Shown here in pieces: positions 19,399 to 62,917 of a stretch of DNA of 64,000 bases. Below the pieces are notes generated by a model that had not been told where the DNA came from, searched no databases, and saw nothing but the letters and a program-made list of their open reading frames with translations. A program made the translations under genes and the position numbers. Where the stretch lies: positions 87,582,782 through 87,646,781 of the forward strand of contig NC_085842.1 in the NCBI RefSeq assembly GCF_035594765.1, in the 5' to 3' direction. The DNA is from Anolis carolinensis (Eukaryota). Positions within the stretch are counted from its first letter, which is position 1, and each line of letters starts with the position of its first letter.

Positions 19399-19659
19399 TG
19401 AGAGAAATCTACCCCTCAGAAGAGAAATTCACCCTTTTGCTGTCTGTTCAGATTTCACCTCATTTTCTCTCCTTAGGATATTTGGACTTTGAAAAACTTG
19501 GCTTGTTATGGAAACAAGGATTGGCGATAAAGCACCAGTGGAGACCCCTTTTCCCCATGATAAGCCTTTCAAGGGTGAATGTCCTTTCCTCTTGAAAAGT
19601 CATGCAAGCACATGGTTTGCGTGAGTTAGTGTTATGGACGCAAAGACTAACATTCCCAC

Positions 19660-19862
19660 GGTCAGAATTGGAACTGCGTTTGCCCTCCCTTGATCGTCGG
19701 GGGAAGAACCAATGACACCGCCGCTCCGTACTGGCTGGCCAGCAAGAAACGAGGCTTCGGCAAAGGGGGCGGGGTTATTTCTGGCCCCGCCCACACGATT
19801 GTCTCCCGAAGAACCAACCACGTTCTGGAAAGGATACCATTGATGTCTGGGTGTTGAGTAGC
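19660..19862 (+). promoter_or_regulatory. Small CpG-rich promoter of the C2-domain gene
   Basis: Local CpG cluster with CCAAT (~19710), GGGGCGGGG and CCCCGCCC boxes just upstream of the ATG at 19863; 4-codon uORF at 19843-19857. Confidence 0.6.
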
Positions 19863-22800
19863 ATGGAGAGGAAGGTTGACCAGGGGGTTACGAGATCCGT
19901 GTCAGCAGTCGGGTAAACAGCTGCCTGGAATCCAAGATGTATTGCCTACTAGCCTGCCTCAAGGAGAGCCACAACACCTCTTCCTCCAAGGACTTTTGGA
20001 TAGCAAAAATGGGCTACCCTTTCAATAATTTTAGTGGCTGCTTGCTGAATCTCGTAGTCGTGGTTCCCAACTTTTGGTTCTACAGCTGCTTTGGACTTCA
20101 GCTCCCAGAAGTCATGACAGTTGGCTAAGTTGGCTTGAAAGATCCCAGGTTGGGAACCATTGCAGAATTCAAGAAGTTTGACACCACTTTTATCTGACAT
20201 GGCTCAGTGCTCTAGTACAGGCATGGGCAAACTTCGGCCCTCCAGGTGTTTTGGACTTCAACTCCCACAATTCCTAACAGCCGGTAGGCTGTTAAGAATT
20301 GTGGAAGTTGGAGTTCAAAACACCCGGAGGGCCGAAGTTTGCCCATGCCTGCTCTAGTATCATGAGAGTTGTAGTTTGGTGAGGCACCAGCAGTCTTTGA
20401 GAGCGAAGGCTAAAGGGCTAGTAAAACTGCAACCCTCAGGGGTCCATAACTTGGAGCCATGACAATTAATGTGGTGTCAAACTACATTGATTCCACCATG
20501 TTGATGCGCCCTTAGTTGATTAGGAATCTGAATGCTGGTCTTTCGAAATCCAACATGACACTAATAATAACAATAATAATAATACTTTGTTTTGTCAAAG
20601 GCTTTCATGGCCAGTATCACTGGGCTGCTGTGAGTTTTCTGGGCTGTATGGCCATGTTCCAGAAGCATTCTCTCCTGACTGATGCCTGCCATAAATGTGG
20701 GGGAAATGTCAGTAGAGAATGCTTCTGGAACATGGCCATACAGCCCGGAAAACTTACAGCAACCAAATAATAATACTTTATTTATAGCCTGCCCTATCTC
20801 TCCTAGGGGACTAAGTGCAGCTTCCAACATAATAGAGGCAAGCAAACATTCAATGCCTGTATAGAACAAAGTAAAAATTAAAAATAAACAAAACAATACA
20901 TTACACATTAAAACATGTAATGTAAAGAATCATCAGTTAAATAATTAACATATAAGCCATTAAAAGCCAGCTAAGGTAGAACATAACATCAGTTTCCTTG
21001 AAACTAGAAGTTCAATGAAGTCACTGCAACTGCTCTTGAACTGGGTAAATATACTTCTGGCTCTACTTTTATTTCATATCAGTATGTTATTGAATCCAAC
21101 AGAACTGCTGATCATTGGGCCTGCTTCTGGGAGTTACAGCAATCCTACTGACAAATGTTGAAAATGTTCCTCTTGTTGTAATACCACTTCTATCTTGCTT
21201 GAATTCTGCTTTGGTTCATTCAGTGAACTCAGTCTATTTTCCATATTTTGACTGAACACAGAATCAAAAGTTCCCAACTTCTCATATAATGAACTACAGA
21301 GCTGTGCCATTCCTAATGTAGAACTCCAAATCTCCAGACAGTCTTACACAGTGGGGTAAGAATATCCAGTTGTTAGCGTATAATCTCCAGATCAGTTTTT
21401 GCTTTGTTTAGTAGTGTTTCAATTTCTGTTGAAACATTTGTTTTCTCTGAAAGCATATTTTATTCTTCTGATGGCATACACTAGCTCATGGTCTAAGGCT
21501 AATTTACTTTTTCAGGGCAATGAGAAGTTTGAAAGAAGGAAGACACAGGTGGTGTCTTTGCTGTAATAAGAGCTAATATTACCAAGGCTGTAGCCAAGGT
21601 TGGGGGGGGGGAGCGGGGTTAGGGGTTCAACCCCTTTCTGGAAATTTTTCAGGTTTTAAAAAAAATCTGGTTTACTCATGAATTTTAACTGGTTTACCAA
21701 ATCCCCATGAGTGTCCATGGAAGTTTATCGATGGAGCCTGATTTCTAAATTATTTTGCGTTATGGAACTACTGTCCATAATTCGCTAAAAAAAGTTTCAA
21801 CCCCCCCCCCCCCCCGAATTTTTTTTCTGGCTATGGCCCTGAACATTACTATAGGCTTTTGGAACTTAAGTTAAATAGTGACCATTTATGCACATTGGGT
21901 CTCCTTGACTTTGTTTTGTTACAAACATGTTAAAAGTGCATTGAAAATGCTAGCTGTTGGTCTTTCAGCCAATTTATGTCCGTACATAGCTGTTCCTCCT
22001 CTCCTACAAAATACTAGTCCAGCTGTCAGCTTCCATCACATGTTAGACATCAGCCACTCCCTCCTTTTCTCAACACAATAGTAATACTACCATTTGCTTG
22101 TCTTTGCAGGCCGGAAGAGGACTCTGAGAAGAGGCAGGCCTGGCACCCTACCCACCTGCGCCTGATCGTCATGCGGGCCTGCAACCTGCGCCCCAAGGGC
22201 ACCACTGGCACCAGCAACCCCTACGTTGTGATTCAGCTAGAGAAGCAAAAATTTCGAACCTCTGTGTTACACCACACCCTAAAACCCGAATGGCATGAGG
22301 AGTGTCTATTACAGCTGCCTGCTGTGCTGGATGATGCCGAAGAGCATGGCCTCGTTCTCACTGTCATGCACCAGTCCTTGCACCATTTCAACCAGTTCCT
22401 GGGCAGAGTCTTCTTGCCTCTTGCCCAGCTCTTTCAGGATAAAACGAAGAGGAAAAATGAGTAAGCATAGGCAACTAGCCCCATAGCAAGGCATTTGGGA
22501 GGACGCATCTTAGAAGTGAAGGCCCTGGGATTCCCTTGCTTTGGTAAAGTAGATCATGCCACAAGCAGCAAAACAGTAAATAGACAGGTGCATTGTTGTA
22601 CAATCCAGGGCCACAGCGGAAATATTACGCTTACATTGTAAGATCATCTAACAAAAGAAAACCATTTCTAAACAAAAGGCTAATATCAATGCAATTGTTC
22701 CCTTAAACATGGCAATCCTTTAAGGGATGGATAAACATGTCTACTTTGTGACAGGGACTAGAAAACTGGTAGGTATCAAAAGGAAAAGGCGTAAGTGGCC

Positions 22801-23109
22801 TAGTGAAAGCCAAGTGGAAGGCCTTTTTTAATCTTCTGACTTTGCAGATGAACCCCTCCCTTTTAGATGTCAAGCCTCATTCATTTCTTCTCTTGTTTTG
22901 CTATCCATGCAGGCATGCAAAACTATCACTAAACCAGCAAGAACTTAATCCTATTCTTTTCCAGCTCAAGCTTTATCACACTGCTGCAATCTCAACACTA
23001 AACTGTATTATATTGTGTATTGCTGGGCTTGGTCCCCATGTGAGCTGCCTTGAGTCCCTTCGGGGAGATGGGGCGGGATATAAGGATAAAGTTGTTGTTG
23101 TTGTTGTTG

Positions 23110-23155
<46 letters not shown>

Positions 23156-23949
23156 TTTATTATGACACAGCAAACAAAATAGATATGCTGGATTTCGTAT
23201 CACAAAATCACAAGTCGAACGCTTCCCAAAATTACAAGTCGAACTACATCACTGTGTGATGTATTTTCGGATGATGTGTGCAGATCCCAGTAGGGTGGCC
23301 TTTTGCAGTTGGCAGATTGTGATTTTGTCAATGTCTATTGTTTCCAAATGCCAGCTGAGATCTTTTGGCACGGCACCCAATGTGCCGATCACCACTGGGA
23401 CCACCTGTACTGGTTTCTGCCAGAGTCTTTGAAGTTCAAACTTGAGGTCCTGATAGCGGCTGAGTTTTTCCTGTTGTTTTTCGTCAATGTGACTGTCACC
23501 TGGGATGGCGACATCAATGATCCAAACCTTTTTCTTTTCCACAACTATGATGTCTGGTGTGTTGTGTTCCAGAACTTTGTCAGTCTGGATTCGGAAGTCC
23601 CATAGTATCTTTGCGTGCTCATTTTCCAATACTTTTGCAGGTTTGTGATCCCACCAGTTCTTTACTGCTGGCAGGTGGTACTTGAGGCATAAGTTCCAAT
23701 GAATCATTTGGGCCTCTGTTTGTAGTCTGTCTGTGCGATTTTCTTACAGCAGCTGAGGATATGATCAATGGTTTCGTCGGTTTCCTTGCACAATCTGCAT
23801 TTTGGGTCATCAGCTGATTTTTCAATCTTGGCCTTAATTGCATTTGTTCTGATGGCTTGCTCCTGGGCTGCAAGGATCAGGCCTTCTGTCTCCTTCTTCA
23901 GTGTCCCATTTGTGAGCCAGAGCCAGAGCCAGGTCGTCGTCGTCGTCTT

Positions 23950-24015
<66 letters not shown>

Positions 24016-27000
24016 GGACTTATCGTGTTGCAGTGCTTTCCAGACTCAAAGATCCAGGCACATCATTTTCATCATCTATATAGTAGAGAAGCACATGTCT
24101 CACATTAAGCCATTTATCAAAAAAGCAGAAAGCATACGAACTAAGCAGGTGACTGGTGAGCTCCAAGAGATAGTTCAGTGCTGAAAATCTTAGCAGATAT
24201 AATCAGAAATCTTGGGGAATGACAAAATAATTCTAAGCACAGTATGGTTACATAAATGGAAATTTGAAAATTCACCAACATTATGATATCAGAGGCTGAA
24301 ACAAACTCCTATAAATTTTAGCTGACAAAGCTAGTTATCAGAGGTTATGGACATTGTAGATGAGCAATACTGAGGTATGACAGAAAAGTAATGAGACTGA
24401 TTTTCTTTTAACCATGGATTTTCAAGGTTATCACTTTCAAAGCACTTCCTTTGGGCAGCTACACAGCAACCGAGGCATTATTTCTATTATTTGTATCAGT
24501 GCTGGAAGGCTTCTCTTGCAATGCATTTCAGCCCATTGATTATGCTATTCTGAATATTATCAAAAGTACCAAAATTGTGCGATTTCAGGTGGTTTTTGAG
24601 CTGGGGGAAAAAAACTCACAGAGACTGCTATCCGGTGAACAGAGGGGCTAGGGAACCACAGGATTTTTTTTCTGCCAAAAATTCACTGATAGAGACTGCC
24701 ATGTAACATGGACTGTTGTCATGGTGCAGCATCCAAATGCATGCAATGCCTTGTCTCACATGTGCCATTCTTTTCTTGAGCCTTCCCAATAAAAAGTTTG
24801 ATTGACACTTTGTCTTGGAGGCACAAATGTGTTGTGGACGATCCCGACAGTCAAAAAAACAAACAAATGAACATTGATTTGATTTTCAATTTGCTTGTTC
24901 TTGCTTTCTTGGAAGCAAGACGGTTTGCCACTCCGGACTTTGGTGTTTGGCTTCTGAGCCATACCTGAAAAATCCATGCTTCATTACTTGTGATCATGCG
25001 ACAGAATTCTAGCTCCCCTGTCAAAACAGTTCGGAAGATCAACACACACGTCCCTCTGACTGGCCTTCTGTTCCATCATGAGGTTTGTGGCAGGAGTTAG
25101 TCTTAACTTCCATGTAAAGGGGGAGGTAGTAGTGTTGTTGGTTCATACACAAGGTTGCTAGTTTCAATATTTTTCTGCCGCAGCTTATATATTAGTCAGA
25201 TTTTCTGGCTTTGCCATACACCTGCAAATATTTAGAAATATAGCATGATACTGTTAGGAAAATCAAAGAAAAGGATGAGTCAGACACTCACTGCATTATC
25301 TCTGCAGGTGGTTTGTGCTACAGTCTCGGCCTGGAAAGAAGGAGAAGTTAAGAGGAAAGCTGCAGCTTGACATCCAATTCTTACAAATCTCCTCACCAGC
25401 TAGTGAGACTGCTATCAGTTCTCATAGGCACGGGTCCCTCTTCAACAGATTCTGGGGAAGCAAGAAGGACAAACGGTATAAAGCGTACAAAGAAACTCCA
25501 TCTCAGTCAAGCAGCCTGGTATGTGTTGGGGGCAATTTTTTTTGTCCCACCAGGAGTATTCGGCAACTTCTAAGTCAATTTCCCCAAGGGGTCATTTAGA
25601 TCCATTTGGTTTTTCCTCTATTTATAATTTCATTAGAAAACCTATATTCATTGGAATATATAGTAATCTCTCCACTTTTGAGGTTTTGACTTTTGCAGAT
25701 ATAACTATTCACAGATTTGATTAAAATGTTATCCCTAGGAAATTCTAGGTCCTTCACTGTGACTCTATTATCAACCTCCTCCAGTCATGCCAGGAGACCT
25801 AGAGCTTTCTAGAGATAACACTTCTCTACAAATCATTTGGTCCTTCAATATGATTCTGTGGATAGCTTCCAACAGAAGTTGATCACAGATTTGTGCAGGA
25901 AAACCTAGAAATTTCTAGAGAACTGTTATCTCAGGTTTAAAAAAAAGCAATTTCTTTGCAGTTTTTCATTTTAATTGGGGTTTTGTGTCTCCGACTCCCT
26001 TGAATGTGGAGGGCTGGCTGTACATTCAATTTATGAATAGCTGTCTTCTGATTTCCATCATTCAAAACTGACTGAAAGTGTTGTTAATGTTGCTTGTAAA
26101 AACCCTCAATGGTTTAAATGAGTCAAATACATATGGATTTCAATGCTATGTCTACTCAAGAATTCCAGTGTTCAGATGCAATAGCATGGAGGAAAGCAGA
26201 TTGCTGAACAATGCATGTCCATACTCAATCTTTACAAACAGGAGTTTGGAAAGCAGTTTATATCCCCTTCATCCTTTGCTTCTATTATAAGACAATTTTC
26301 TAACGGACCCCAGAATATTAGGAATGACACAGTCTAGGCAATGTACTACTAATATTAACAGCTTTATAGAGTATCTACTTGTGAGTCCCCATGTTTGTGA
26401 TGAAACAGTGATTCACACTAAGAACTCATAATCCAATAGAAGCATCTTAGGCTCTAAGACTATTTGTTGACCACATCTGTTTCTCTTCTATCCAGGCAAA
26501 CGATGAGGATTCATCATCCTCCAGTGTGAACACAGAGCTGGAGGCCTCGGCAGGGAAGTCTGAACACAGATCTGGCAGCACCTTGCACATGGTAGCAGGT
26601 GACTCATTTAGGGACAGCACAAAGACTGTAAGCTTTACAGGAGGGTACTAGACTGGTCTCATGTCTAACTGGAGAGACTTGAAATTTTCCCTCTCCCTCT
26701 GCATTCACGCAGACTGTATCAGCTAGTTTAATAGCAGTGAGACAAAGATTGACTCCCATCCTTACCCTCAAAGTAGAAACCACTCCATGTAATTAACCTT
26801 TAGCACAGGATTGGGGAATAGGAGCTCCCTGTGACACAGTGGGTGAAACCACTGAGTTGCCGAACTTGCTGACTTAAAGGTCGGTGGTTCGAATCTGGGG
26901 AGCAGAGTAAGCTCCCACTGTCAGCTCTACCTTCTGCCAATCTAGCAGTTTGAAAATGGCAGGAAGGTGATGGCGCTCCATGCAGTCATGCCGGCCACAT

Positions 27001-28969
27001 GACCTTGGAGGTGTCCACAGACAACGCTGGCTCTTCGACTTAGAAATGGAGATGAACACCAATCCCCAGAGTCAGACACAACTAGACTTAATGGCAGGGG
27101 AAAACCTTTACCTTTACCTATCATTCATTACTTGTGAAATAACTCTCACTTTAGGAAGCAAAACCAAAGATTAGTAGATGTCCATTTCTTGACAAAGAGC
27201 AGCACCTGCTGTGCTGCTCCATTCCTGGATTTTTACATTTTTTTAAACATCTTAACATTTAGGAGGTTGTTTCTCTACATTTTGGGCTTTTAGGTGGTTT
27301 AAAGCCCAGGAGGGGTCTAGTTTCTAGGGCAGCGCAAAACAAACCTGCTTCCTCTTCCTTATGACATATTTATGAAGGACTATCATGTATCCTCTCAATC
27401 TTCTGAAGGCTAAACATCCCCAGCTCCTCATAGGGCATGGCACTCCTCATAGGGCACAGTCTTCAGACATTTGATCATTTTAGTTGCCATCCTCTGGACA
27501 CCTTCTGTCAATCTCTCTTTTAAACTGTGGTGCTCAGAATTGGACACAGTATTCCAGGTGAGGTCTAACCAAAGCAGAATAGAGGGGCACCATGAATTCC
27601 CTCAGTCTACACCTTTTGATGCAGTCCAAAATCCATTGGCTTTTTAGCTGCTGTATCACACTGTTGGCTCATGTTTAACTTGTTCACAAAGACTCCAAGA
27701 TCTTTTTCATGTGGACTGTTGTTGAGCCAGGCATCACCCAGGCATCACTTTGCATTTCATTTTTTCTGCCCAAGTGTAATATTTTACATTTGTTCTTGTT
27801 GAAATTCATTTTGTTAGTTTTGGTCCAGCTCTCTAATCTGTTAATGTCATTTTAAATTCTGATCCTGCCCTCTGGAGTATTAGCTATCTTTCCTAATCTG
27901 ATGTCATCTGTAAACTTGATAAGCATGCCCTCTAAACCTTCATTCAAGTCATTGATATTTTTTTCGTGCCAGAGAGACTTGAGAAATGCAAGTTGCTTCT
28001 GGTGTGAGAGAATTGGCCGTCTTCAAGAACGTTGTCCAGGGGACACCCAGATCTTTTGATGTTTTTACCATCTTTGTGGGAGGCTTCTCTCATGTCCCCG
28101 CATGGAGCTGGAGCTGATAGAGGGAGCTCATCCGCATGCTCCCCGGGTTGGATTCGAACCTGGCAGCCTTCAGGTCAGCAACCCAACCTTCAAATCACAA
28201 GGCTTTAACCCACTACGCCACCAGGGGCTCCAAGTAATTGATAAAGATGTTAAAGTACTGGGCCCAGGACCGAACCCTACGGCACACCAGCAGTCACTTC
28301 TTTCCAGGATAAAGTGGAACAATTGGTGAGCACTCTTTGGGTTTGGTCCTCCACAGAGATCAGGGCTGCTTTTTAAACATCCAAGATCTGATATCCTGCA
28401 CTTTGTATAAGGCTTATGTAGTGTAACAGACAGTAAAATATACTCCCCTAGTCACAAATAAAAGATTGAATGAAAGATGCATTTGGAGTCTATGCAACCA
28501 CACCTGTGTAACCCTTGTGGCTCTGCCCCACCCTACAGCAATCTCTGTTGGGAAGAAACCTACCTCCAAAACTCAGCTGCAGAAGTTGATCTCATGTAAC
28601 TACAAGGGACTTCCCTCTGATGCTGTGAATGCCAATCAGTCAGAGCATCCAAGCAGCCTGGAACAGTTCAGCAGTATTTTTTCCCCACACCCCATGAAAA
28701 AATCTAAGCCTCTGAAAGAGGAGAGAAACCCGGAGGCAGCAGGTATCTCCATGGAGGCTTGGCAAGCATCTCTCCCTCCCCTCCATGTTGCAGGGCCCAG
28801 CCACCTCCCTCCACGGGCACGGACCCTCCACCCTTCCACTGTGAGCCTCCAGCAAACCAACACCAGCTCATCCACAACCAGTTTTGTGCCTGGTCATCTC
28901 CACAGATGCCGGATGAGGCTACATAGGAGCTACCAATTTTGTCGTAGGTGTTTTGGCCTTGGTTCCTGA
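19863..28969 (+). CDS. Class I Rab11-FIP-like C2-domain protein lacking the C-terminal Rab11-binding domain, 392 aa; CDS exons 19863-19912, 21516-21548, 22110-22460, 25308-25518, 26496-26598, 28539-28969
   Basis: Exons 3-4 read [60 protein letters not shown]|[25 protein letters not shown], colinear with the RAB11FIP2 N-terminal C2 domain (WFPTHVQVTV..RRKTEWFRLESKQGK..RGEIKVNIQF). Six GT-AG exons join in frame (phases 2,2,2,0,1; 1179 nt). Start in a strong Kozak context (agcATGg). C2 exons are high confidence; the two short 5' exons and the distal exons are predicted. Confidence 0.75.
20218..20351. mobile_element. hAT MITE with perfect 8-bp TSD
   Basis: CTCTAGTA at 20210-20217 and 20352-20359; TIR CAGGCATGGGCAAACTTCGGCCCTCC. 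Confidence 0.9.
20589..20765. mobile_element. Miniature inverted Penelope pLTR pair
   Basis: Two opposed pLTR ends; 14-bp TSD AATAATAATACTTT at 20575-20588 and 20766-20779. Confidence 0.8.
23150..23915 (-). mobile_element. R4-clade (Dong-like) non-LTR element, 3' part with restriction-like endonuclease
   Basis: Zinc knuckle ([18 protein letters not shown], frameshifted); RLE motif [28 protein letters not shown]; (TTA)n microsatellites on both flanks. Confidence 0.85.
23910..24015. repeat. Compound microsatellite (GAGCCA)n-(GTC)n-(TTC)n-(TTA)n
   Basis: Direct inspection. Other microsatellites at 6353-6382 (TTG), 23091-23150 and 35080-35121. Confidence 0.85.
24370..25188 (-). mobile_element. 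Degraded mariner transposon
   Basis: TIR-like GAGGTATGACAGAAAAGTAATGAGAC; transposase remnants [11 protein letters not shown] (cf. ITGDETW), [24 protein letters not shown]. Confidence 0.7.
26820..27118 (+). mobile_element. Sauria SINE with internal deletion
   Basis: tRNA head, conserved 3' half, ACCTTT tail. Confidence 0.85.
27330..28350 (-). mobile_element. CR1 LINE fragment interrupted by a SINE
   Basis: Reverse complement of the CR1 ORF2 region seen at 135-700, extending further into the RT region. Confidence 0.8.
27958..28230 (-). mobile_element. tRNA-derived SINE inserted in CR1
   Basis: 13-bp TSD CAAGT(C/A)ATTGATA at 27945-27957 and 28231-28243. Confidence 0.88.
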
Positions 28970-30904
28970 AGCTGGAGTGTTACATTTCTGTTTCCCTTTG
29001 TGAAAAAGAAGGCTTACTATATAAATGCATTATATTCAGACGATATGTACGTGTACAGCTGTTTTTTGCAGGGAGGCGGTTGGAACTAAGCAAAGCTTAG
29101 TTGTGGCTTTGAAGGATGGGTTTAGATCAGGATTATGGAATCCAGGCTGATAACGTTATGGTTTTAATCCAACACTGCACTAGGAGATCAGCTTTTCTTT
29201 TTCCCAACTCAACCTACTTGGGGGGAGCTGAGGGAGCTGCAGTAGGAGGGGGATTGGCTCTTCCTTGTTCTACTGATGCAAATAGGTCTACCAGGAGAGC
29301 ATGGGTGGATTCTACTTACAGAAACAGGAAAAAGGGGGAACGTATAGTACTGGATAATTTGGTGTTACAGTGGTCCCCCTGTATCCATGCCTCTACATCC
29401 ACAGATTCAACCAACCACAGATTGAGCATATCCGTGGTTGAATCCAACCACAGAAATAAGAAAAATACAGTATTCAAGTGTGTATTTTTTTAAAGTTTAA
29501 AAATATTCAAAAAACAATGTAGGACATCTCAGTTCTCCCCCATTTCTGCTGGCCTTATGAGGCAGGAGCTCTTCTGTGGGATTTCCCTGCTGTGGGAGGC
29601 AGATGTTCTGTCACTATAATTATTTTGGTGCACATGTGGATGGTGGATAGAAGGGATCAGGTGGAAAGGGGGACTGACTGTCAGAGTGGGTAAGGGAGGC
29701 TGACATACACACTTTCACAGCTGGCTTCGGGGTGCGCTCAAGCTCCCTTCTCATCCCTACATATAAGGGATTTGAGCATCCATATTTTGCTTATTTGTGG
29801 GTGTTCTGGAATGAATCCCTCAGGGATAGAGGGTCCACTTGTACTGGTGTGCTTATCTGTGCAGCACAGAAGAGGCATGCTGGATGAGACCAAGGCCCAT
29901 GTAGGGAATCTACCATTCTATTCATACAGCTGCCTGCAGGAGATGTTCATAGGCCCCTCCATCTCAAAATCTCCAGCAGCTGCTATTGAGAGGCATATTG
30001 CCTCAGATACTGAAAGTGATATATAATCATCTTGACTGCTACCTGCTCATGGCCCCAGGAGCCTCCATAAATCAATGCAGTTCCACTTTTAAAGCCATCC
30101 AAATTGACAGCTATTGCTACAACATGTGACAGTGAATTCAACAATGCCATTCATTCCAACTGCAGTATTCCTTCAGCATTCATTCACTTTCTTGGCTTTA
30201 TTGCAATGATCCAACAGCAGTTACAGCTCCAGAAGCCCCAGGAACAAAATTCTTGATCACGATGGGTTTAGATGAGGTGGTTCCAGATAATATTCTTAAA
30301 GACCCAAGTGCAAGATGTTCATTGTCTTAGCAAGACCCCCCTCCCTGCAGAGGAAGAATCGGGGGCACATACGGGCTTCACAGCAGCAGATGCTTATGCA
30401 TATTTATCATGAAATGCAAAGTTCAAAGAAACTAACCAGACACCGAGTCCTGCACGTGCTAGAATGGCAAAAAACTCAGACAGGTCCACAACTCTAGCTC
30501 TTCCATACCATCTGGGTACTGGAGCCTTGGTAGGCAGTGAGAAAAAGCTGATAGACATGATCTTGGCTCTTAAATTATCTTCAATTCTTGAGATGCAGGT
30601 AGTTGAGATACTATTCCTCTGAATGGCAGGCAGGCTGAGCAAAGACTCAGCCCATTTAATCTTGCCAATGCCTCTACATTCATAGTGAAACAGGCAGCAT
30701 TGTGCAAGTGCCTGTCAATGGATGTGGACCCTCAGCCCTCTTCTTTTAACCATCTGTCTCACAGACATCCAATGCTGTGCTCTTGATTCCTGCAGAAGGG
30801 TCTGCCTCCAGATAGTCCAGCTGCAGTGCTGAAGACCTGCTGCTGCTTTTGCTTTTGCTTCTACTCCTGCAGCAATATATTAGGCAGTCTGTGAAGGAAG
30901 TAGT

Positions 30905-33900
30905 TCAGCCAAATGCACACCACGGAGTCTCACTGGAGTCACACTGTAGGAAAATGTTGAGAACAGTGCAGGGAGCGCCTGCCACACTCAGGGAAGTGCG
31001 CGACTCCACTCTGTATTCAAGGTTAGTCAGGCCTCCAGTACGGTCCACCTTGAACTGTTCCTGCATGGAAACAAAGTGCCACATACCATGTAAAAGGATC
31101 CAGAGTAGAAAAATGATGAATGGGAACATGGAAAATGGAATGAATGAAGTCTACATGAAAAGGCTCAGAGAATGCCTGGAATGGAGCAAGCAGGGAGAAG
31201 ATAAAGGAGAGGGTACAGGCTAAGACTACCATCATAGAAGGAAATCTAGATTAATTAAGCACTGGAATACAAAATTACATAGCATCACAATTTTATGGCC
31301 TTTGGAATTCAGACATACACATCACAGTTTTGAGGCTGCAGGCAAGGTAAATTATGCAAGCTTCCATGAACTCACTTATGTAATTCACAATTGCAGGTTT
31401 TTGGAGCATTTTTGTGAATTTAGTAATTTGTAGTTATTAGCACCTTTCAAGCAGCACTCAGAAGGATGCAGTAGATAATCCCATCTTATATTTTATTTTC
31501 AGCAAAACCTACTCTGAAGGCTTTTCTTCACAATAGAGCTCATGCCCTTCCACCTATTCATCCCCAAATGTTTTAAAAAACGGTAGAAAAGGACTTCCAA
31601 GCATTTACTATTCAAATATTTACAAAACAATTTTAGAGCCTGTTATTACTCATAGTCAGTCCTAGACCGAGGGACAAAAAATTCTGCCCTTTCTCTGCTT
31701 CAGTTGCAAAGTTAAGTCAAAGCAAGAGGATCTAAGGAGTAATATGGGGCTCAACTGTGCCATGGGGTCAGCCCTAAACAGGTAAAGCAACATCTCCAAG
31801 TTGCAAAATACACATACATCTTTCATGCACTTCCCATACAAGAAACTCCTACCTGCTTCTGGGAAGCAATACGCTTCTGGTCTCTCTTACGCCAAGCTGG
31901 ATCATGCAAATGTTGGAATGTCTTATATCCACTTGTAATTCCCAAGGGCCGGAAAAGCTGAAAGATTAACAAAAAAGACATGGCTTGCATAAGTCACTCC
32001 TCAGAAGTAAAAAAATATTTCTGAAAAATCACAAAACAAAGGAGAAGATTGCCTAAGTCACACCTATTTCTGGAAAATGTAGGAAAAAGTTTGTGGCCAG
32101 CATCAGAGACTGGAAGTAGATTCATACAATCATATGAATGAGACCACAAGGGCCATCCAGTTCAGTAAAATGCACAGAATTGCCAAAATGGATGCCTGAG
32201 TTAAGAGCTTGGAAATAATGCAGTATAAGTGACATTGTTAGCTGTAATTGATATGTAATAGTATTTTATTATTAAGTAAGGTAATATTATTGAGGTTGTC
32301 ATTTTCTAAGTGTAATGGTACCATTTATTCCTTTTACTTTTTAAAAGGCACTTTGAGCAGACGTTCATGTGTCATGCTCATCTCTTAATTTTTTTAAAGC
32401 CCCAAAACAAACAATGGGCAACCCTTTGGGGCTTTGCTTTGAGATACATAACACACACTTTTTAAAAAAAAAAAAAAACTTTTAACTGAAAGTTCCAAGT
32501 CCACCAAATTCCACAATTAGCCATGCTGAGCCTTCACCTGAAGTCCAACTCCTCTGATACGGCGATAAAATTCATCATCCTCTCGGCCCCAACCCCAAAA
32601 GCGGTTAGACATTCCATTACACTGAAATAACAATAAATAAGTAGTTAATTGAAGAACAAGGCAAAGATTGTGAAAAGTGCTGCTGTCTGTGCTGACGCAC
32701 TGCTGGCACTATTACCTCAAGACATTTACATCTTCAGGATTAAGGAAGTGGAATTTTCTGTATCTGAAGCAAGTAAATACAGAGTAAGAGCTCCAAAGTC
32801 TTAACCAACTAGTCTGTCACAGTATCAAGAACAGCAAGGATTTATTCTTTCTGGGGGGGGGGGACACCTCTCATGAACCCATCTTATAAATAAACAAAAC
32901 TTAGACTTACCATTCGAAAGTGCTGCTTGGTGAGTAGTAAGATACCACCTACATAGGTGCTATAGTGATAAAGAGGATGCAGTTCAGGTGATGCTACATG
33001 AAAAGGGCCAGCAGCTGGGAAGCTATAGTCCAGTTCCTCATTGAGAGGTAGCAAGTCCACATCGTGCATCGCAATATAGTCTGTGTCATTTCCACTTTCC
33101 AAGAAGCCCACATTGATCAGAGATGCTCTGTTAAACCTGTCCAAGAGACCAGGTGTATTTAGGTTGAGCCTTGAGTTACGGAGTTTTATTCAGGCAATCT
33201 TAGGCCCCTTCTACATTGCCATATAATTCAGATTATCAAAGCAGATAATCCATATTATCTTCTTTGAACTGGATTATATGAGTCAACACTACTATATAAT
33301 CCAGTTCAAACCAGATAATATGGATTTTATATGGTAGTGTAGAAGGGGCCTTAGTTACCTCTGTATCAAACCTCTATCCAATGGTAGAGGTAGGAAACAT
33401 GATGTCCTACAGAAAATTTTGGATTGCAACTTCCATCAACCCCAACCAGCATAAGCAATGGTGAGAAATGGTGGAAACTGCTACTGGAAGGCTTTGTGTT
33501 TCCACTACTTATTTTAGGGTTTGTACCAGAGTTGGGCAGAAAATAAAAAAATGCACCTTATTTATGTGTATTTCTGAAAAGGTTTTTTTCCCCTCTGGAA
33601 TTACGAGGGACCAGAGAAGAAAAAGCACAGAGGAATAAACATCTGAGATGTTTAGAATTTATGCAACATGTACTTCACAGAGAAGGGAATTTCAGATATG
33701 ACCAGGTTGAATATCTCTCAGATGCACAAAAAGGTTAGACTTCTATTTCAGAAACAGGGAAGCCTGGTATTTCTGTTCATTCTATACTGAAGCTATACAC
33801 AAAGCCCGAGAAGGGAAAGTACAATATCTAAGACAGAGAATAGGTCAGAATACAGACAAAAAAATAACATGGGGTTTGAAATAACCCATACCTCACAGTA

Positions 33901-36900
33901 CCTGTAATGATCCACCTGGTTAATTATGAAGATATGATGCCGAATTTTCTTCCTATTGAGAAAACGATGCATGTGAGGCACAAAAGTCAGCAGCTCCTCA
34001 AAGCGCTCCCTGAACGGCACCAACACTGCTAGGCGATGTGGCCCCCATGATGGGTCATCGGGAAGCTGAGGTAGAAGGTCAAATGTGCAGAGTTTCTGCT
34101 GCACTGTGGCCTCCACTCTTTGACCTCTCATCATGTCTCCTGAGCAGCTAAGCTGCAGCCACAGCAGGGAGAGAAAACCCAGCAAAAGAACCACAAAGAA
34201 GAGCTGAAAGAGAGAGCATTTTCGGGGTAGGATGCTCAGAAGCCGCCAGAACCTATAGCAAAACCAGAAGAAGGCAATACAATACAATGAGAGATGATAG
34301 AGTAACAAAAGACAAAACAGGCTGGATCTACACTGCCTATATCCCAGGATCGGATCCCAGATTATCTGCTTATTCCAGGTTATCTTGCAGCGTAGACTCA
34401 TATAGTCCAGTTCAAAGCAAATAATCTAGGATCAGATCCTGGAATATAAAGCCGTGTAGATCCAGCCACAGATTTCAGGATGGTCTGCTTTCATAGAGAT
34501 TGCTACTCCAGTTGAAAATGCATTCTGCACATGCCTCCAGAAAAAGCTCAGCATACCACTACTGTTACATTGGAAAAATAAAGTAGGGAAGGACTGGGCA
34601 GCCATTGGAAGATGCTGCCATGCTATATTTATAGGAGAATGAAATGCCCTTGGTGCTCTTGATATTTTGGCTTACATTTCCATAAATCCCATATCACTGC
34701 CAGTCCTGTGGATGGACAAATGGGGAAACTGAAGTTCATAACATTTGAAAGACCAACCATTCCTCCCTGATATGAGTCCTCAAAGTATTTAACATGCTAT
34801 TTTCAGAACCTTTATAAAAAGCTTTGACAGCTAAATCAGCTGTCGCAATTTAAAATACAAGTGAAGACCCATCTCTTTTGGCAGGCCTACCCAGACAGTT
34901 TTAATGACGAATTTTAAACCTGCATCTTTTGTTTAATCTCTGTTTTGTGTATTTTAATATGTCTCTTCTGGGAATATGTTTTAATATGTTTATTTTAAAG
35001 AATGTTTTAGGTGAATGTGTGTTTCATAATGTTATAACCAGCCTCTAGCTGTGAGCACAGGCGGGCAAAAAATAAAATTTATTATTATTATTATTATTTA
35101 TTATTATTATTATTATTATTATACACTGCATGGTAGCTCATAATGCAGATGAAGCAGAAAGATGGTGGCTTAAGTTATCTAGCAACTGAAGGATGACTCT
35201 CTGCAACTCTATGCATGCTTACTTGAAAGTATGTCCAATTAAAAGTGGGATTTGCTCTGACACAGGGTTGACTGTTAGCCTGTCAAGTACATAATCTTAT
35301 TCTCACATATTCTGAAATGAACTATTTACATAGAATGATTTGATCTGCCTCAAAGTTATATCCTTTCACCTAGAAACTGCATCCCCTCCCCCCAAGCTCA
35401 AATATGAGGCAGATAGTTAAATTGCTTGGAAATAATAGGCATTTTCCATTGACTGAGGCTGGATCTACACTGCCATATAATCCCGATTATCAAAGCAAGT
35501 AATTCAAATTCCCCTTTAGTAGGGGTGAAATATCTCTGGCCATCTGTTACAAATTAAGGTTTGCTGATTGAAAAGCTGCACCCGAAATCCTTCTCTCCTA
35601 CATGGCCATCCAAGGTACTGGCACCCACTCCAGGTTCCATTCTGGTAAGCCTAGGGCTCACTGTGCTTTCTATTCACTCCCAGCATTCCACTATAAGGGT
35701 GCATCTATACCACGCATGGGCAAACTTCGGCCCTCCAGGTGTTTTGGACTTCAACTCCCACTGGCTGTTAGGAATTGTGAGAGTTGATGTCCAAAACACC
35801 CGGAGGGCCGAAGTTCACCCATGACTGATCTATACTGTAGAATTAATGCAGTTTGATATCATTTTATCTGCCATGGCAGATCAAGCGGTGTGTCAGACTG
35901 CATGCATTCCAGATCAGGCATGGGTAAACTTTGGCCCTCCAGGTGTTTTGGAATTTAACTCACACAATTCATAATAGCCTAAAGTTTGCCCTTACCTGAT
36001 CTAGATGCACCTTCAGGCAATAATCCCCCAAACTCTAGTGTTACAGGTATTTTGGATTTCAACTCCCAGAAGTCTCAGTGGCCTTGGCCTTCAATGATTG
36101 TGGATGAAGGGAGCTGAAGTCCTAAACACCCGAAAGAGCACAATCTGGGAGACCCCAAGGAAAAGGAAAGGGATGCCCTCGCCACACCCAGTAGAAGGGA
36201 GGAAAGTTTTGGTTGCTGTGAGTTTTCCGGGTTGTATGGCTATGTTTCAGAAGTATTATCTCCTGACGTTTCACCCACATCAATGGCAGGCATCCTCAGA
36301 GGTTGTGAAGTTTGTTGGAAACTAAGCAAGTGGCGTTATATATCTGTGGAATGTCCAGGGTGGGAGAAAAAACTCTTGTCTGCTTGAGGCAGGTGTGAAT
36401 ATAGTGATTCGCATTGAATAGCCTTGTAGCTTCAAAGCTTGGCTGCTTCCTGCCAGGGAGAATCCTTTGTTGAGGTGTTAACTGGCCCTGATTGTTCCTT
36501 GTCTGGAATTCCCTTGTTTTTTTAATGTTGTTCTTTATTTACTGTCCTGATTGTAGAGTGTTTTTAATGCTGGTAGCCAGATTTTGTTCATTTTCATGGT
36601 TTCCTCCTTTCTGTTGAAATTGCCCACGTTTATGGATTTCAATGGCTTCTCTGTGAATTCTGACATGATAGCTGTTAGAGTGGTCCAGCATTTCTGTGTT
36701 CTCCAATAATATGCTGTGTCCAGGTTGGTTCATCAAGTGCTCTGCTATGGCTGACTTCTCTTTTTGGATTAGTCTGCAGTGCCTTTCATGTTCCTTGATT
36801 CGTGTTAGGGCAGTGCTGCATTTGATGGTCCCTATGTAGACTTGTCCACAGCTGCATGGTATACGGCAGACTCCTGCAGAGGTGAGAGGATCCCTCTTGT

Positions 36901-37968
36901 CCTTTGCTGAACACAGCATTCGTTGGATTTTCTTAATGAGTCTGTAGATAGTTTGTAGGTTGTGTTTCTTCATCAGCTTTCCTATGCGGTCAGAAGTTTC
37001 CTAGATGTATGGTAAGAACACTTTTCCTCTTTGTCTTTACTCTCGTGGCTTGTTCTTGGCCTTGCAGCTCTTCTGATTTGGAGTACCCATTGACTTGTAG
37101 AGCCCAGTTTAAATGGTTTAGTTCACCTTGGAAGAAGTGGGGTTCGCAGATTCCTTCTGCACAGTATGTCAGGGCTTTAATTGTGTTCCTTTTTTTTTTT
37201 TTTTTACTTGGGTGATGGTTGGAGTTCTTATGTAGATATCTATCCATGTGTATAGAATTTCTGTAAACTGTGTGGCCAAATTGTTGACCACACAGTTTAC
37301 AGAATCAGTCAGGACCAATCCCAACAAAGGATTCCCCCAGGCAGGAAGCAGGTGAGCTTTGAAGCTGTAAGGCTATTCAATGCTGTCTGTTTATTTTATG
37401 TGTTGTTTTAGGCACCTTGTGCCATATGTAAGCCGCCTCGAGTCCCTTCGGGGAGATGGAGGCGAGGTAAAAAAATAAAGTTATTCTCCCACTCTGGGCC
37501 TTCCACAGATATATAAACCCTACTAGCCTAGTTTCCAACAGACCTTACAACCTCTGAGGATGCCTGCCATAGATGTGGGCGAAACCTGAGTAGAGAATGC
37601 TTCTGGAACATGGCCATACTGCCCGGAAAACTCACAGCAACCCGGTCATGAAAGCCTTCGACAACACGGAGGGAAATGTTTCCCAACCGTTGAGAGCCGA
37701 GCATCCTGTTCTTCCCTGTATGGGAACCGCATCTCAGAGTCTGTTTCCTGGCTGCAGGAGAGACAAGGAAGGACTGAGGGCTGCAGGCACTTCGGAGCGT
37801 GGCTTTGAAAACAACCCGCGGCGGAGCCTTGCTTCTTCCACCCAGAGGGTCGCCCCAGCGTTTCTCCTCTCTCTCCGTCCCTCCCCGAAGCCCTGTCTTT
37901 CTCATTTCCCTCTCGATCGGTCCCTTGCCCGCCAAGACTTACCCCCCTCCGCCCGAGCGCCGATACAT
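30905..37968 (-). CDS. B4GALT7: Beta-1,4-galactosyltransferase 7 (xylosylprotein galactosyltransferase I), 315 aa; CDS exons 37968-37943, 34252-33902, 33136-32911, 32621-32538, 31957-31853, 31060-30905
   Basis: [52 protein letters not shown] (DxD), [32 protein letters not shown] exons give 948 nt in frame. Confidence 0.96.
33203..33350. mobile_element. Harbinger-like palindromic MITE
   Basis: TIR GGCCCCTTCTACA; TTA on both flanks. Confidence 0.75.
35711..35827. mobile_element. hAT MITE with 8-bp TSD
   Basis: ATCTATAC at 35703-35710 and 35828-35835. Confidence 0.85.
36210..37667 (-). mobile_element. Penelope-like element: GIY-YIG/RT remnant with inverted pLTR, in B4GALT7 intron 1
   Basis: [32 protein letters not shown] (GIY-YIG) and [12 protein letters not shown]; opposite-strand pLTR pieces at 37310-37385 and 37490-37667. 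Confidence 0.88.
36262..36302 (-). ncRNA. Minimal type I hammerhead ribozyme motif in a Penelope pLTR
   Basis: Minus strand reads CCU-CUGAGGA-U-GCCUGC-CAUUGAU-GUGGGU-GAAAC-GUC^AGG: complete catalytic core, 6-bp stem II, loopless stem III, CCU/AGG stem I. Confidence 0.7.
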
Positions 37969-49459: not shown

Positions 49460-50367
49460 GGTAGCTATGAGTTTTTCGGGCTGACGTTTCACCTACATCC
49501 ATGGCACGCATCCTCAAAGACTGTGAGGCCTGTTGGAAACTAGTCAAGTGGGTGGAATGTCCAGGGTGGGAGAAAGAACTCTTGTTAGTTGGAGGCAAGT
49601 GTGAATGTTGCAATTGATCACCTTAATTAGCATAGAAAAGCTTTGCAGCTTCAAGGCTTGGCTGCTTCCTGCCTGGGGGAATCCTTTGTTGGAAGGTGTT
49701 AGCTGACCCTGATTGTTTCCTATATGGAATTTCTCTTTTCTGAGTGTCGTTCTTTATTTACTGTCCTGATTTTAGAGTTTTTAAATACTGATTGCGAGAT
49801 TTTGTTCATTTTCAAGGTTTCCTCCTTTCTGTTGAAATTGTCCATATGCTTGTGGATTTCAGCGGCTTCTCTGAGTAGTCTGACATGGTGGTTGTTAGAG
49901 TGGTCCAGCATTTCTGTGCTCTCCAATAATATGCTGTGTCTAGGTTGGTTCATCCAGTGATCTCCTATGGCTGAATTCTCTGGTTGAGTCACTCTGCAGT
50001 GCCTTTCATGTTCCTTGCTTCGTGTTTGGGCAAGGCTGCATTTAGTGGTCCCTATGTAGACTTGTCCACAGCTGCATGGTATATGGTAGACTCCTGCAGG
50101 TGTGAGAGGATTCTTCTTGTCCTTTGCTGAACGTAGCATTTGTTGGATTTTCATTTTTGTTGGATCCAACAAGAGTTCCTTCTCCCACCCTGGACATTTC
50201 ACAGATATAAACCCCACTTGCCTAGTTTCCGACAGACCTCAGAGCCTCTGAGGATATCTGCCATGGATGTGGGCAAAACGTCAGGAGAATGCTTTTGGAA
50301 CATGGCCATATAGCCCGGGAAACTCACAGCAACCCAGTGATTCCAGCCATGAAAGGCTTGGACAACA
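49460..50367 (-). mobile_element. Penelope-like element with inverted pLTR, directly upstream of TMED9
   Basis: GIY-YIG ORF remnant 49720-50140 ([40 protein letters not shown]); plus-strand pLTR 50165-50367; 14-bp TSD CACTGACTTTACTG at 49446-49459 and 50368-50381. Confidence 0.9.
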
Positions 50368-60725: not shown

Positions 60726-62367
60726 TCATTTCTTCCGGCTTGTGATTTGGCTGCAAATCCAGTTCATCCCATCCTAGAAAAATCAGAGGCAAAGTCAGTG
60801 GTTTCTACTACCAGGTCCTACTTCCAGCATTGACTAGTGTCAGCTCTAACTAGCCATACATCCATATACTGATCTTAGTGATGTTCTATTGTTTTATTCT
60901 CTAGAACCTTTTTTATCTCTCCCAAGCTCTGTCCAAAAGGAAAAGTTTATTTCTGGATAACAGCTGCCCAACCTCCCCAGCCAAGCATGTTTATTGACAT
61001 GCGGGTTGGGGAATTCTGGCAACTGGAATCCAAACCATTTCCAACCTCTGATTCCCTTGATACCTGAACTCCTTCACCAGACAGGGCAGAGCAGGCTTGA
61101 ATTTGCCATGGTCGGTCTCGATAAGTGTGCAGGTTCAGCCCTTCAGCAATGTCCGCTGCGGAGGATGCTGTTGCTAGATCCTGCTTGTTAGCAAATACTA
61201 GTAAAGGAACACTAGTAAGATTCTCATCTTCCACCAGTTCTGACAATTCCTGTAACATAGAACACAATAGATTCTTAACAAGTTCATCTGAAAAACAGAA
61301 TCAGGATCCATTGCAAGTGGTTTGAGGTAATATTGTCGAGGCTTACAAATGCTTTCTTTGTTGTCACTGTTACCTATAATCAACCTCTGAAAATCTGATG
61401 ACAAACCTCCAGCTTCATAGCACAATTGCCACAGTTAAACTGGAGAGCCAATATAGTATAGTGGTTAAGGCAATGGGTTAGGACTTGAAAGAGCTGGGTT
61501 CTAATTCCCAAGGCGCCATACATTTACTGGGTGAGCATGGGGCAGTTGCTTTACCTCAGACTGACTCACTTCATAGGATTATTCTGAGGATGAGAGCTAA
61601 GTATCTTGCCTTGAGTTTTTTAGTTGAGACAGAAATGTAAATATGACAGTTTTAATATCAAATAAACCCCGAAGTGGGGAGTTGTGAGGTGAAGACATCA
61701 GGCAGGCTTTGGGCACCTGGTTCTAGTTTGAAACTGTTAATGACAATGATTTCAATTTTTCAGAGAATCCATTGCCAGATGTAGAGTGCAGTGCTGTCCA
61801 AACTGCTGAATGAACAGACTGCATGTGTTTGTTCTGTAGGGTGGGATTACGGTACAAAGGGGTGGGAGGTCTGTCCTACCTGCCCAGTCTCCTCAAAGCG
61901 TTTCTGGTCGGCACTGTCAATAACATAAATCTGTAAAAAAAATAGCAACAAAGAAAGAAGGCTTGTTACCAGCTGTAATACTATTAGAGCTAAAGCTCTT
62001 TTGGTTCTCTTTACATATAGTTCCTTAAAACATATCTGAGACAGACAATCAAATGCACCCATCCATCCATGTAGAAATAAAAGAAACTAAGTAACTGGAA
62101 AATTCAGTTTATAATGGTCGCCTTATGTCTACCATTAGATTACATTGCCTGATAATACTGTTGGTCGTCCTTTAGATTTTAATTTAGCCCACTTGTTCCT
62201 ACAGACAGGGTATTGCAGAAGGAATTTGGTCTGCTGGTCTCAATGCTCACCAGCATGTCTGTGCTGCCCAGATACTTCTTCCAATAGGTCCGGATGGCCC
62301 GTTGTCCTCCGATGTCCCACACATTAAGTTTGAACCCATGTGAGTGGACACTTTTAATGTTGAATCC
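60726..62367 (-). CDS. ARL3-like small GTPase, 3' part (5' exons not found in the window); exons 62367-62251, 61930-61880, 61249-61064, 60773-60726
   Basis: [19 protein letters not shown] (G3), [26 protein letters not shown] (G4), [18 protein letters not shown] (G5), [15 protein letters not shown]. Exon sizes 117/51/186/48. Too divergent from canonical ARL3 to assign that symbol. Confidence 0.9.
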
Positions 62368-62917
62368 CTGTGGATAGGAAGCAAAAAAAACTGCTAAGAA
62401 AGTAAATTGCTAGCCACTGCATAGTCAATTGCAGGCTGAATTTATGATGAGTTGTCATTTCTAATGTGGAGACCTTGTGAAGGAGAGAGGTGGAGCACAT
62501 ACGGATTATGCCATGTGTGGAGAACTTATATTTATTCATGTGTTTGGATTTCAATTGCCAGAATACCCTGCCAATATTTCCAGTGGTGTGAGAATGTGGG
62601 AATTTTAATATCACATTTTGAAGATCCTAACCCTCCCTTAGTCCACGGGAAAGCTTGAAATCTTATACGTAGGTACCAGCAGCATTTATGGAGGAAACAC
62701 CTTCTAACAAATGAGTAGTGAAATTTTCAGGTTATATGGCATTTCCATATCTATGGATGTATCTTCAATCAATGTCAGAGTCTTACTTTTAGTGTGAGAT
62801 CCTAAACACCTTTCTAATGATTTTCAGAAAGAAATCTGTAACAGCTACACTCATATCACATAAGAGCAATATAGAAGGGGATATGCATCATAATGTATAT
62901 TTGTGTAGAAATGCACC

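Follow-up and report, generated by a model that had tools for sequence, protein, structure and literature searches.

A Rab11-FIP-like gene of Anolis carolinensis with a C2 domain, a cysteine-bearing tail and no Rab11-binding domain: a candidate fourth class I ohnolog

A window of 64,000 nucleotides (nt) from the Anolis carolinensis genome (contig NC_085842.1, positions 87,582,782 to 87,646,781 of the forward strand; all coordinates without a locus label refer to this window) was found to contain a gene related to those encoding the class I Rab11 family-interacting proteins (FIPs) RAB11FIP1 (RCP), RAB11FIP2 and RAB11FIP5 (Rip11). This FIP-like gene is a real gene encoding a C2 domain and a cysteine-bearing C-terminal tail, and no Rab11-binding domain (RBD) was detected in it. 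Its coding exons, all on the + strand, are located at 19863..19912 (16 codons plus 2 nt with a phase-2 donor, the same exon and donor being present in the Komodo dragon), 22110..22460 (most of the C2 domain, namely strands 1-6 and the start of strand 7), 25308..25518 (the last two C2 strands, up to approximately 25383, and a basic segment at approximately 25435-25482), 26496..26598 (a short Ser/acid-rich exon running from phase 0 to phase 1, phases that recur in sharks and in other tetrapods) and 28539..28969 (a disordered Ser/Pro-rich linker and the Cys tail). An earlier interpretation made from the letters alone, here called the sequence-only reading, had added a 33-nt exon at 21516..21548 (+) and deduced six exons encoding 392 amino acids (aa). 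All six exons indeed possess GT-AG ends and join into a 392-codon frame with zero internal stops and the C-terminus previously stated, but the supported form comprises five exons and 381 aa, identical to RefSeq XP_062826229.1 ('FIP2-like'; database record P0168). The 33-nt exon is in frame but unsupported: it occurs neither in RefSeq isoforms X1 and X2 nor in the aligned orthologues, and no match to it was found in the Komodo dragon intron. Judged by these comparisons, it represents at most a minor alternative exon. Use of an alternative acceptor at 28794 yields exactly RefSeq isoform X2 (296 aa), in which the Cys tail is retained. Furthermore, a share of 0.21 in sequencing runs X13 and X14 equals the exon-only share of 0.157 plus a background of approximately 0.05, which is a hint only, since these runs are merely guessed to represent RNA.

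The C2 domain was recognised by Pfam (PF00168, E 1e-19, exon 22110-22460) and matched newt FIP2 with an E-value of 8e-38. In the AlphaFold model, an eight-stranded C2 domain spans residues ~32-159 (strands 130-139 and 148-159, together with the alignment, place its end in exon 25308..25518), most of residues 164-354 are disordered, and a single helix is formed by residues 357-376. In order from the N-terminus, the protein comprises the C2 domain, the basic segment, a linker predicted to be disordered and a final helix that bears a CxxC motif. Likeness to class I FIPs comprises the N-terminal FIP-type C2 domain starting with W-x-P-T-H (42-47% identity to FIP2), the long disordered middle and the segment following the C2 domain, which is conserved in sharks. 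The sequence-only reading had regarded both the C2 domain and this basic segment as colinear with RAB11FIP1/2/5. For the lizard protein, colinearity was observed for the C2 domain and stops at residue 166 (42% identity to newt FIP2), but the segment behind it has diverged in tetrapods and is clearly conserved only in sharks. Searches of the PDB by sequence and fold matched only generic C2 domains, and an ESM Atlas search with the last exon gave zero matches. The C2 region of the RBD-less proteins (described below) carries a net charge of +6 to +12, compared with +3 to +7 for full-length FIPs. None of the eight members aligned retains the loop-1 Asp found in FIP1/2/5, another residue taking its place. 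C2 domains of FIPs bind phospholipids (PMC6356010, PMC6328864). The basic character of the domain and the replaced Asp suggest calcium-independent lipid binding, and the C2 domain of the FIP-like protein is therefore considered to be probably a calcium-independent, phospholipid-binding one.

The Rab11-FIP family has been described as five proteins with an RBD common to all of them (PMC6356010), and the RBD is both the Rab11-binding part and a dimerisation coil (PMC6356010, PMC6328864). Pfam found no RBD-FIP match (PF09457) in the exons, in the Anolis database protein or in any full-length member of the RBD-less family, while full-length FIP controls were matched. A local hidden Markov model (HMM) of the RBD, run on 22461-29390 and 29427-30908 in all three forward frames, likewise detected none. 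When the DNA behind the C2 exon was screened at nine further loci as well as in the window, the best of 4,495 forward-frame segments reached an E-value of 4.8, compared with 7e-27 for the control. Moreover, for an internal donor at 28742 no downstream RBD exon for joining was found. The claim that neither the protein nor the DNA before the 3' end of the neighbouring B4GALT7 gene encodes a FIP-RBD was thus confirmed for the stretches scanned. Since the RBD defines class I FIPs, the FIP-like protein should not be classed as a Rab11 effector; Rab11 binding and dimerisation through an RBD coil are not expected. Further differences from the class I FIPs are its length of ~380 aa, the Cys tail, the replaced loop-1 Asp, an extra 5' coding exon in amniote RBD-less genes and the missing Ser-rich middle motif of FIP1/2/5, for which members of the RBD-less family scored E 0.5 or worse with a local HMM that recovers held-out FIPs with E-values between 1e-17 and 1e-20. 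The region of this motif is taken here to be a kinase and myosin Vb site. A PxxPMKP stretch in the sawshark was considered as a FIP motif and dropped, being absent from other sharks. The possibility that the Cys tail is an eroded RBD was rejected as well (0.04% probability in a comparison of tail and RBD profiles).

The C-terminal tail, encoded at 28892..28966 (+), is predicted to form a basic amphipathic helix (residues 357-376) carrying C362, C373 and C376, for which a role as palmitoylated membrane anchor is proposed on the basis of the AlphaFold helix, its hydrophobic moment and Cys conservation. In Anolis, the tail shows the top hydrophobic moment among 198 windows, and it ranks first or second among amphipathic windows after the C2 domain in 14 of 17 proteins. 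Two to four Cys residues were found within the last 34 residues of all 17 proteins checked. The cluster takes the form CxxC-F/L in amniotes, CC in salamanders and CCxxCF in sharks, C376 being the single invariant Cys from sharks to marsupials, and the stop codon lies at the same place after the tail in ~40 independently annotated species. This Cys-bearing helix had escaped the sequence-only reading and is the best clue to the mechanism. Short isoforms ending before the Cys tail are annotated in some marsupials and sharks or rays (P0178, P0156, P0019, P0180, P0057).

In order to determine the taxonomic range, the C2 exon was searched against all cluster representatives and subsequently against database proteins. 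RBD-less proteins of ~340-420 aa were identified in squamates, turtles, axolotl, newt, echidna, platypus, many marsupials, sharks and rays, complemented by a chimaera fragment. Orthologous RefSeq models include XP_007474216.1 (opossum), XP_038627231.1 (echidna) and XP_069507646.1 (axolotl). The searches recognised no member in birds, crocodilians, frogs or bony fishes, a tentative result given that they were limited by words, length and rank. The sole placental match was tamandua XP_076994108.1, a 152-aa single-exon gene consisting of one open C2 exon with a plausible donor and a long branch in the tree; neither another exon nor a neighbour was found within 10 kb of its locus (L009:10001-10459). 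Its pairwise dN/dS (ratio of nonsynonymous to synonymous substitution rates) of 0.18-0.40 does not prove decay, and the exon may be a relic. The gene had been supposed to be lost in mammals; this does not hold, as echidna, platypus and many marsupials carry an intact copy. Among mammals, it seems to have been lost in placentals only, and it is apparently also lost from common model vertebrates.

Downstream of the FIP-like gene, the 3' part of a convergent B4GALT7-type gene, a separate gene serving as synteny marker, is located at 30908..34425 (-), as evidenced by PF13733 and PF02709 matches at 32887-33189, in agreement with the sequence-only reading. A B4GALT7-type gene likewise adjoins the FIP-like gene convergently in four other amniotes, namely Komodo dragon, echidna, turtle and wombat, and in the turtle TMED- and LMAN2-type genes follow beyond it. 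By their human location, B4GALT7, TMED9 and LMAN2 are 5q35-type genes and hence markers of one arm of the 4p/5q/8p/10q paralogon. In the wombat, a homeodomain gene (L004:21415-25041, -), which by position we take to be PROP1-like, lies between the FIP-like and B4GALT7 genes; no trace of it was found in the same gap of Anolis, Komodo dragon, echidna and turtle.

In a tree of the C2 domain and the following segment, the RBD-less members, ranging from chimaera to marsupials and numbering 17-18 across the two trees computed, formed one group set apart from FIP1, FIP2, FIP5 and the FIPs of cyclostomes and invertebrates (support 93/96). A second tree, from which lamprey, hagfish, invertebrate and tamandua sequences, a single fragment and an unnamed long row were left out, again recovered this group (94/97); in these trees, several FIP rows are labelled by grouping and not by name. 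These results support the earlier view of a separate, old class I FIP paralogue that did not arise by recent copying of FIP1, FIP2 or FIP5. Both an RBD-less gene and a full-length FIP are held by sawshark, white shark, newt and rattlesnake. Two shark sequences (P0045/P0139) considered as an RBD-bearing orthologue were rejected, since they group with FIP5. Furthermore, three introns with phases 2, 0 and 1 are common to four cartilaginous fishes and four amniotes, as are an exon of 68-72 codons after the C2 exon and a stop closely following the Cys motif. The presence of these introns in chimaera, shark and ray members places the origin of the gene before the shark-tetrapod split. Between Anolis and Komodo dragon, dN/dS amounted to 0.18, 0.18, 0.24 and 0.14 by exon (the first two values refer to 22110..22460 and 25308..25518, the last to 28539..28969) and to 0.17 overall (361 codons). 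As judged from these codon comparisons, the gene including its tail exon is under purifying selection.

FIP5 is presumably located on the 4-type arm of the paralogon. The unrooted tree of jawed-vertebrate sequences separated FIP1 and FIP2 from FIP5 and the FIP-like gene (98/94). A first genome duplication that set the 8/10 paralogons apart from the 4/5 ones, a split described in PMC2655272, would produce this pattern. The suggested origin as a genome-duplication paralogue therefore stands in so far as the unrooted four-group topology is that expected for a fourth ohnolog, but approximately unbiased (AU) tests leave other root placements standing. Several observations weigh against this origin. 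Support for the RBD-less group is slightly below the starred threshold, and the AU test does not discard an alternative with the tetrapod members beside FIP2 (p 0.088). A clade of the FIP-like gene with FIP5 falls just 0.2 log units behind, and one with FIP2 is not rejected either (p 0.138); in fact, every alternative tried survives the AU tests, and lamprey, hagfish and invertebrate rows do not settle in the tree. Because the root is not fixed, an older or non-genome-wide duplication is possible. Moreover, no neighbour gene was seen within 10 kb at four shark loci, and PMC2655272 places 2p with 8p as one arm. Taking both sides into account, it is considered likely that the FIP-like gene arose in the genome duplications of early vertebrates as a fourth class I Rab11-FIP gene, which lost its RBD before the shark-tetrapod split and has been kept since.

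Based on the Cys tail, the amphipathic windows and the precedent of GRK6, a two-anchor mode of action is proposed. GRK6 is targeted to the plasma membrane by an amphipathic helix and palmitoylated C-terminal Cys residues (PMC4072583). The likeness lies in the basic amphipathic helix and C-terminal cysteines predicted for the lizard tail and serves as a working analogy, with no homology claimed. The FIP-like protein would act as a monomeric, Rab11-independent peripheral membrane adaptor, its first anchor being the basic, probably calcium-independent C2 domain with the basic segment behind it, which would bind phospholipid, and its second the C-terminal amphipathic helix with S-palmitoylated cysteines. 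The acylated tail would thereby occupy the place of the RBD in FIP1/2/5, and lipid anchoring would replace Rab11-GTP as second recruitment signal. The ~195 disordered residues between the anchors could allow the protein to mark one membrane or to tether two. Palmitoylation, lipid binding, localisation and partners are what we infer from these predicted features. Some features of the tail speak against such an anchor: its net charge is -1 to 0, and hence not basic, in monotremes, opossum and axolotl; the shark tail is a CCxxC following prolines with a weak helix; the amphipathic character is weaker in sharks and marsupials; and confidence in the AlphaFold helix is moderate (predicted local distance difference test, pLDDT, ~70). 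Even odds are accordingly given to a two-anchor adaptor that is independent of Rab11 and uses acylation in place of recruitment by Rab11. For the identity of the gene and the mechanism taken together, a probability of roughly 0.55 is assigned. The most far-reaching version is advanced tentatively and held to fall somewhat short of an even chance: at the origin of jawed vertebrates, an undescribed fourth ohnolog would have exchanged its GTPase-binding domain for a tail carrying a lipid modification and become an acylation-switched, Rab-independent adaptor or tether, retained by sharks, salamanders, reptiles, monotremes and marsupials and lost in placentals and apparently in common model vertebrates.

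A different role would be that of a decoy occupying lipids or partners of the C2 domain and post-C2 segment of FIP1/2/5 and damping Rab11-dependent recycling. The C2 identity of 42-47% to FIP2 and the almost intact post-C2 segment of sharks would suit a decoy, but heterodimerisation via the RBD coil is impossible (PMC6356010, PMC6328864), the middle Ser motif is unmatched (best E 0.5), tetrapods have a diverged post-C2 segment, and a decoy alone leaves the dN/dS of 0.14 in the tail exon unexplained. The competitor role put forward in the sequence-only reading is weakened by the double function of the RBD as dimerisation coil (PMC6356010) together with the missing middle motif, and is regarded as unlikely. 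Alternatively, the tail might bind zinc or form disulphides within or between chains, providing a dimer or protein-binding site instead of a lipid anchor. CxxC spacing in most members, with His or Cys nearby, fits this idea; against it, only one Cys is invariant, the first CxxC position is Phe in Varanus, Lacerta and Rhineura, and salamanders have CC. Such a hydrophobic swap is more compatible with a membrane-facing helix than with a metal site, making this possibility slightly less probable still than the decoy.

The two-anchor function could also be combined with another origin, i.e., a segmental or older duplication or separate RBD losses in the shark and tetrapod genes. The unfixed rooting, a shark/tetrapod split that the AU test does not reject and the lack of shark neighbours within 10 kb are in line with this scenario. 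Intron positions, phases and the Cys tail are, in contrast, common to both lineages, which fall into one group in 96% of bootstrap trees, and topology and amniote synteny fit the paralogon; another origin is thus about as improbable as the decoy function. Finally, the gene model could be missing part of a full-length FIP, or the gene itself could be a pseudogene in decay. No canonical polyadenylation hexamer (AATAAA or ATTAAA) was found on the + strand from 28500 to 31500, and 36 bases (29391-29426) lay outside the RBD scan. This explanation is nevertheless very improbable in view of the common stop position in ~40 independently annotated species, the lack of an RBD in the downstream DNA and dN/dS values of 0.14-0.24 in every exon tested.

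The gene and its orthologues are already present in RefSeq through automatic annotation as 'rab11 family-interacting protein 1-like / 2-like' models, which are automatic names only and inconsistent (FIP1-, FIP2- and FIP5-like); a literature search found no paper describing these RBD-less proteins as one family, so that for their grouping as an RBD-less FIP family no published description was found. Retention of a C2-type FIP without RBD from sharks to marsupials indicates that the FIP C2 module has a Rab11-free job. The protein also provides a natural construct for studying lipid choice by FIP C2 domains, called unknown in PMC6356010, and a clean example of an ohnolog with an early architecture change and later placental loss. 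Its use is limited by the existing automatic annotation and by its seeming absence from the usual model animals.

Upstream of the coding region, a small CpG-rich promoter region is located at 19601..19900 (+), with a GC content of 0.56-0.57 and an observed/expected CpG ratio of 0.75-0.89 in 200-nt windows (0.85-0.89 across 19601-19850). It includes an inverted pair of GC boxes at 19767..19808 (no strand assigned; 42 nt, 79% identity, E 9e-7 vs. the region upstream of the Komodo dragon orthologue). The small CpG promoter noticed earlier was thus corroborated, its double GC box also occurring in the Komodo dragon. Further upstream, 12420-12761 (+) gave a match to the N-terminal end of model XP_060615854.1 (P0184) from Anolis sagrei (pairwise E 3e-18); this model accordingly joins exons ~7 kb upstream to the C2 exon, representing either a mis-join or an alternative 5' end. 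At the other side, the 3' end of the FIP-like gene (28969-30907, without canonical hexamer) may overlap the convergent B4GALT7 transcript. Additional genes in the window comprise a SCAN (PF02023, E 8e-36), KRAB-like and C2H2 zinc-finger gene at 5900-12163 (+), upstream of the FIP-like gene, and exons of an ARL3-like small GTPase at 60950-62409 (-; PF00025, E 1e-17) past LMAN2, possibly a further paralogon copy on the same arm. Moreover, retroelement fragments were recognised by eye at 23252-23876 (-), 36542-37000 (-) and 49723-50238 (-), among them a non-LTR (long terminal repeat) endonuclease-like piece in the intron 3' of the C2 exon and two Penelope-like pieces.

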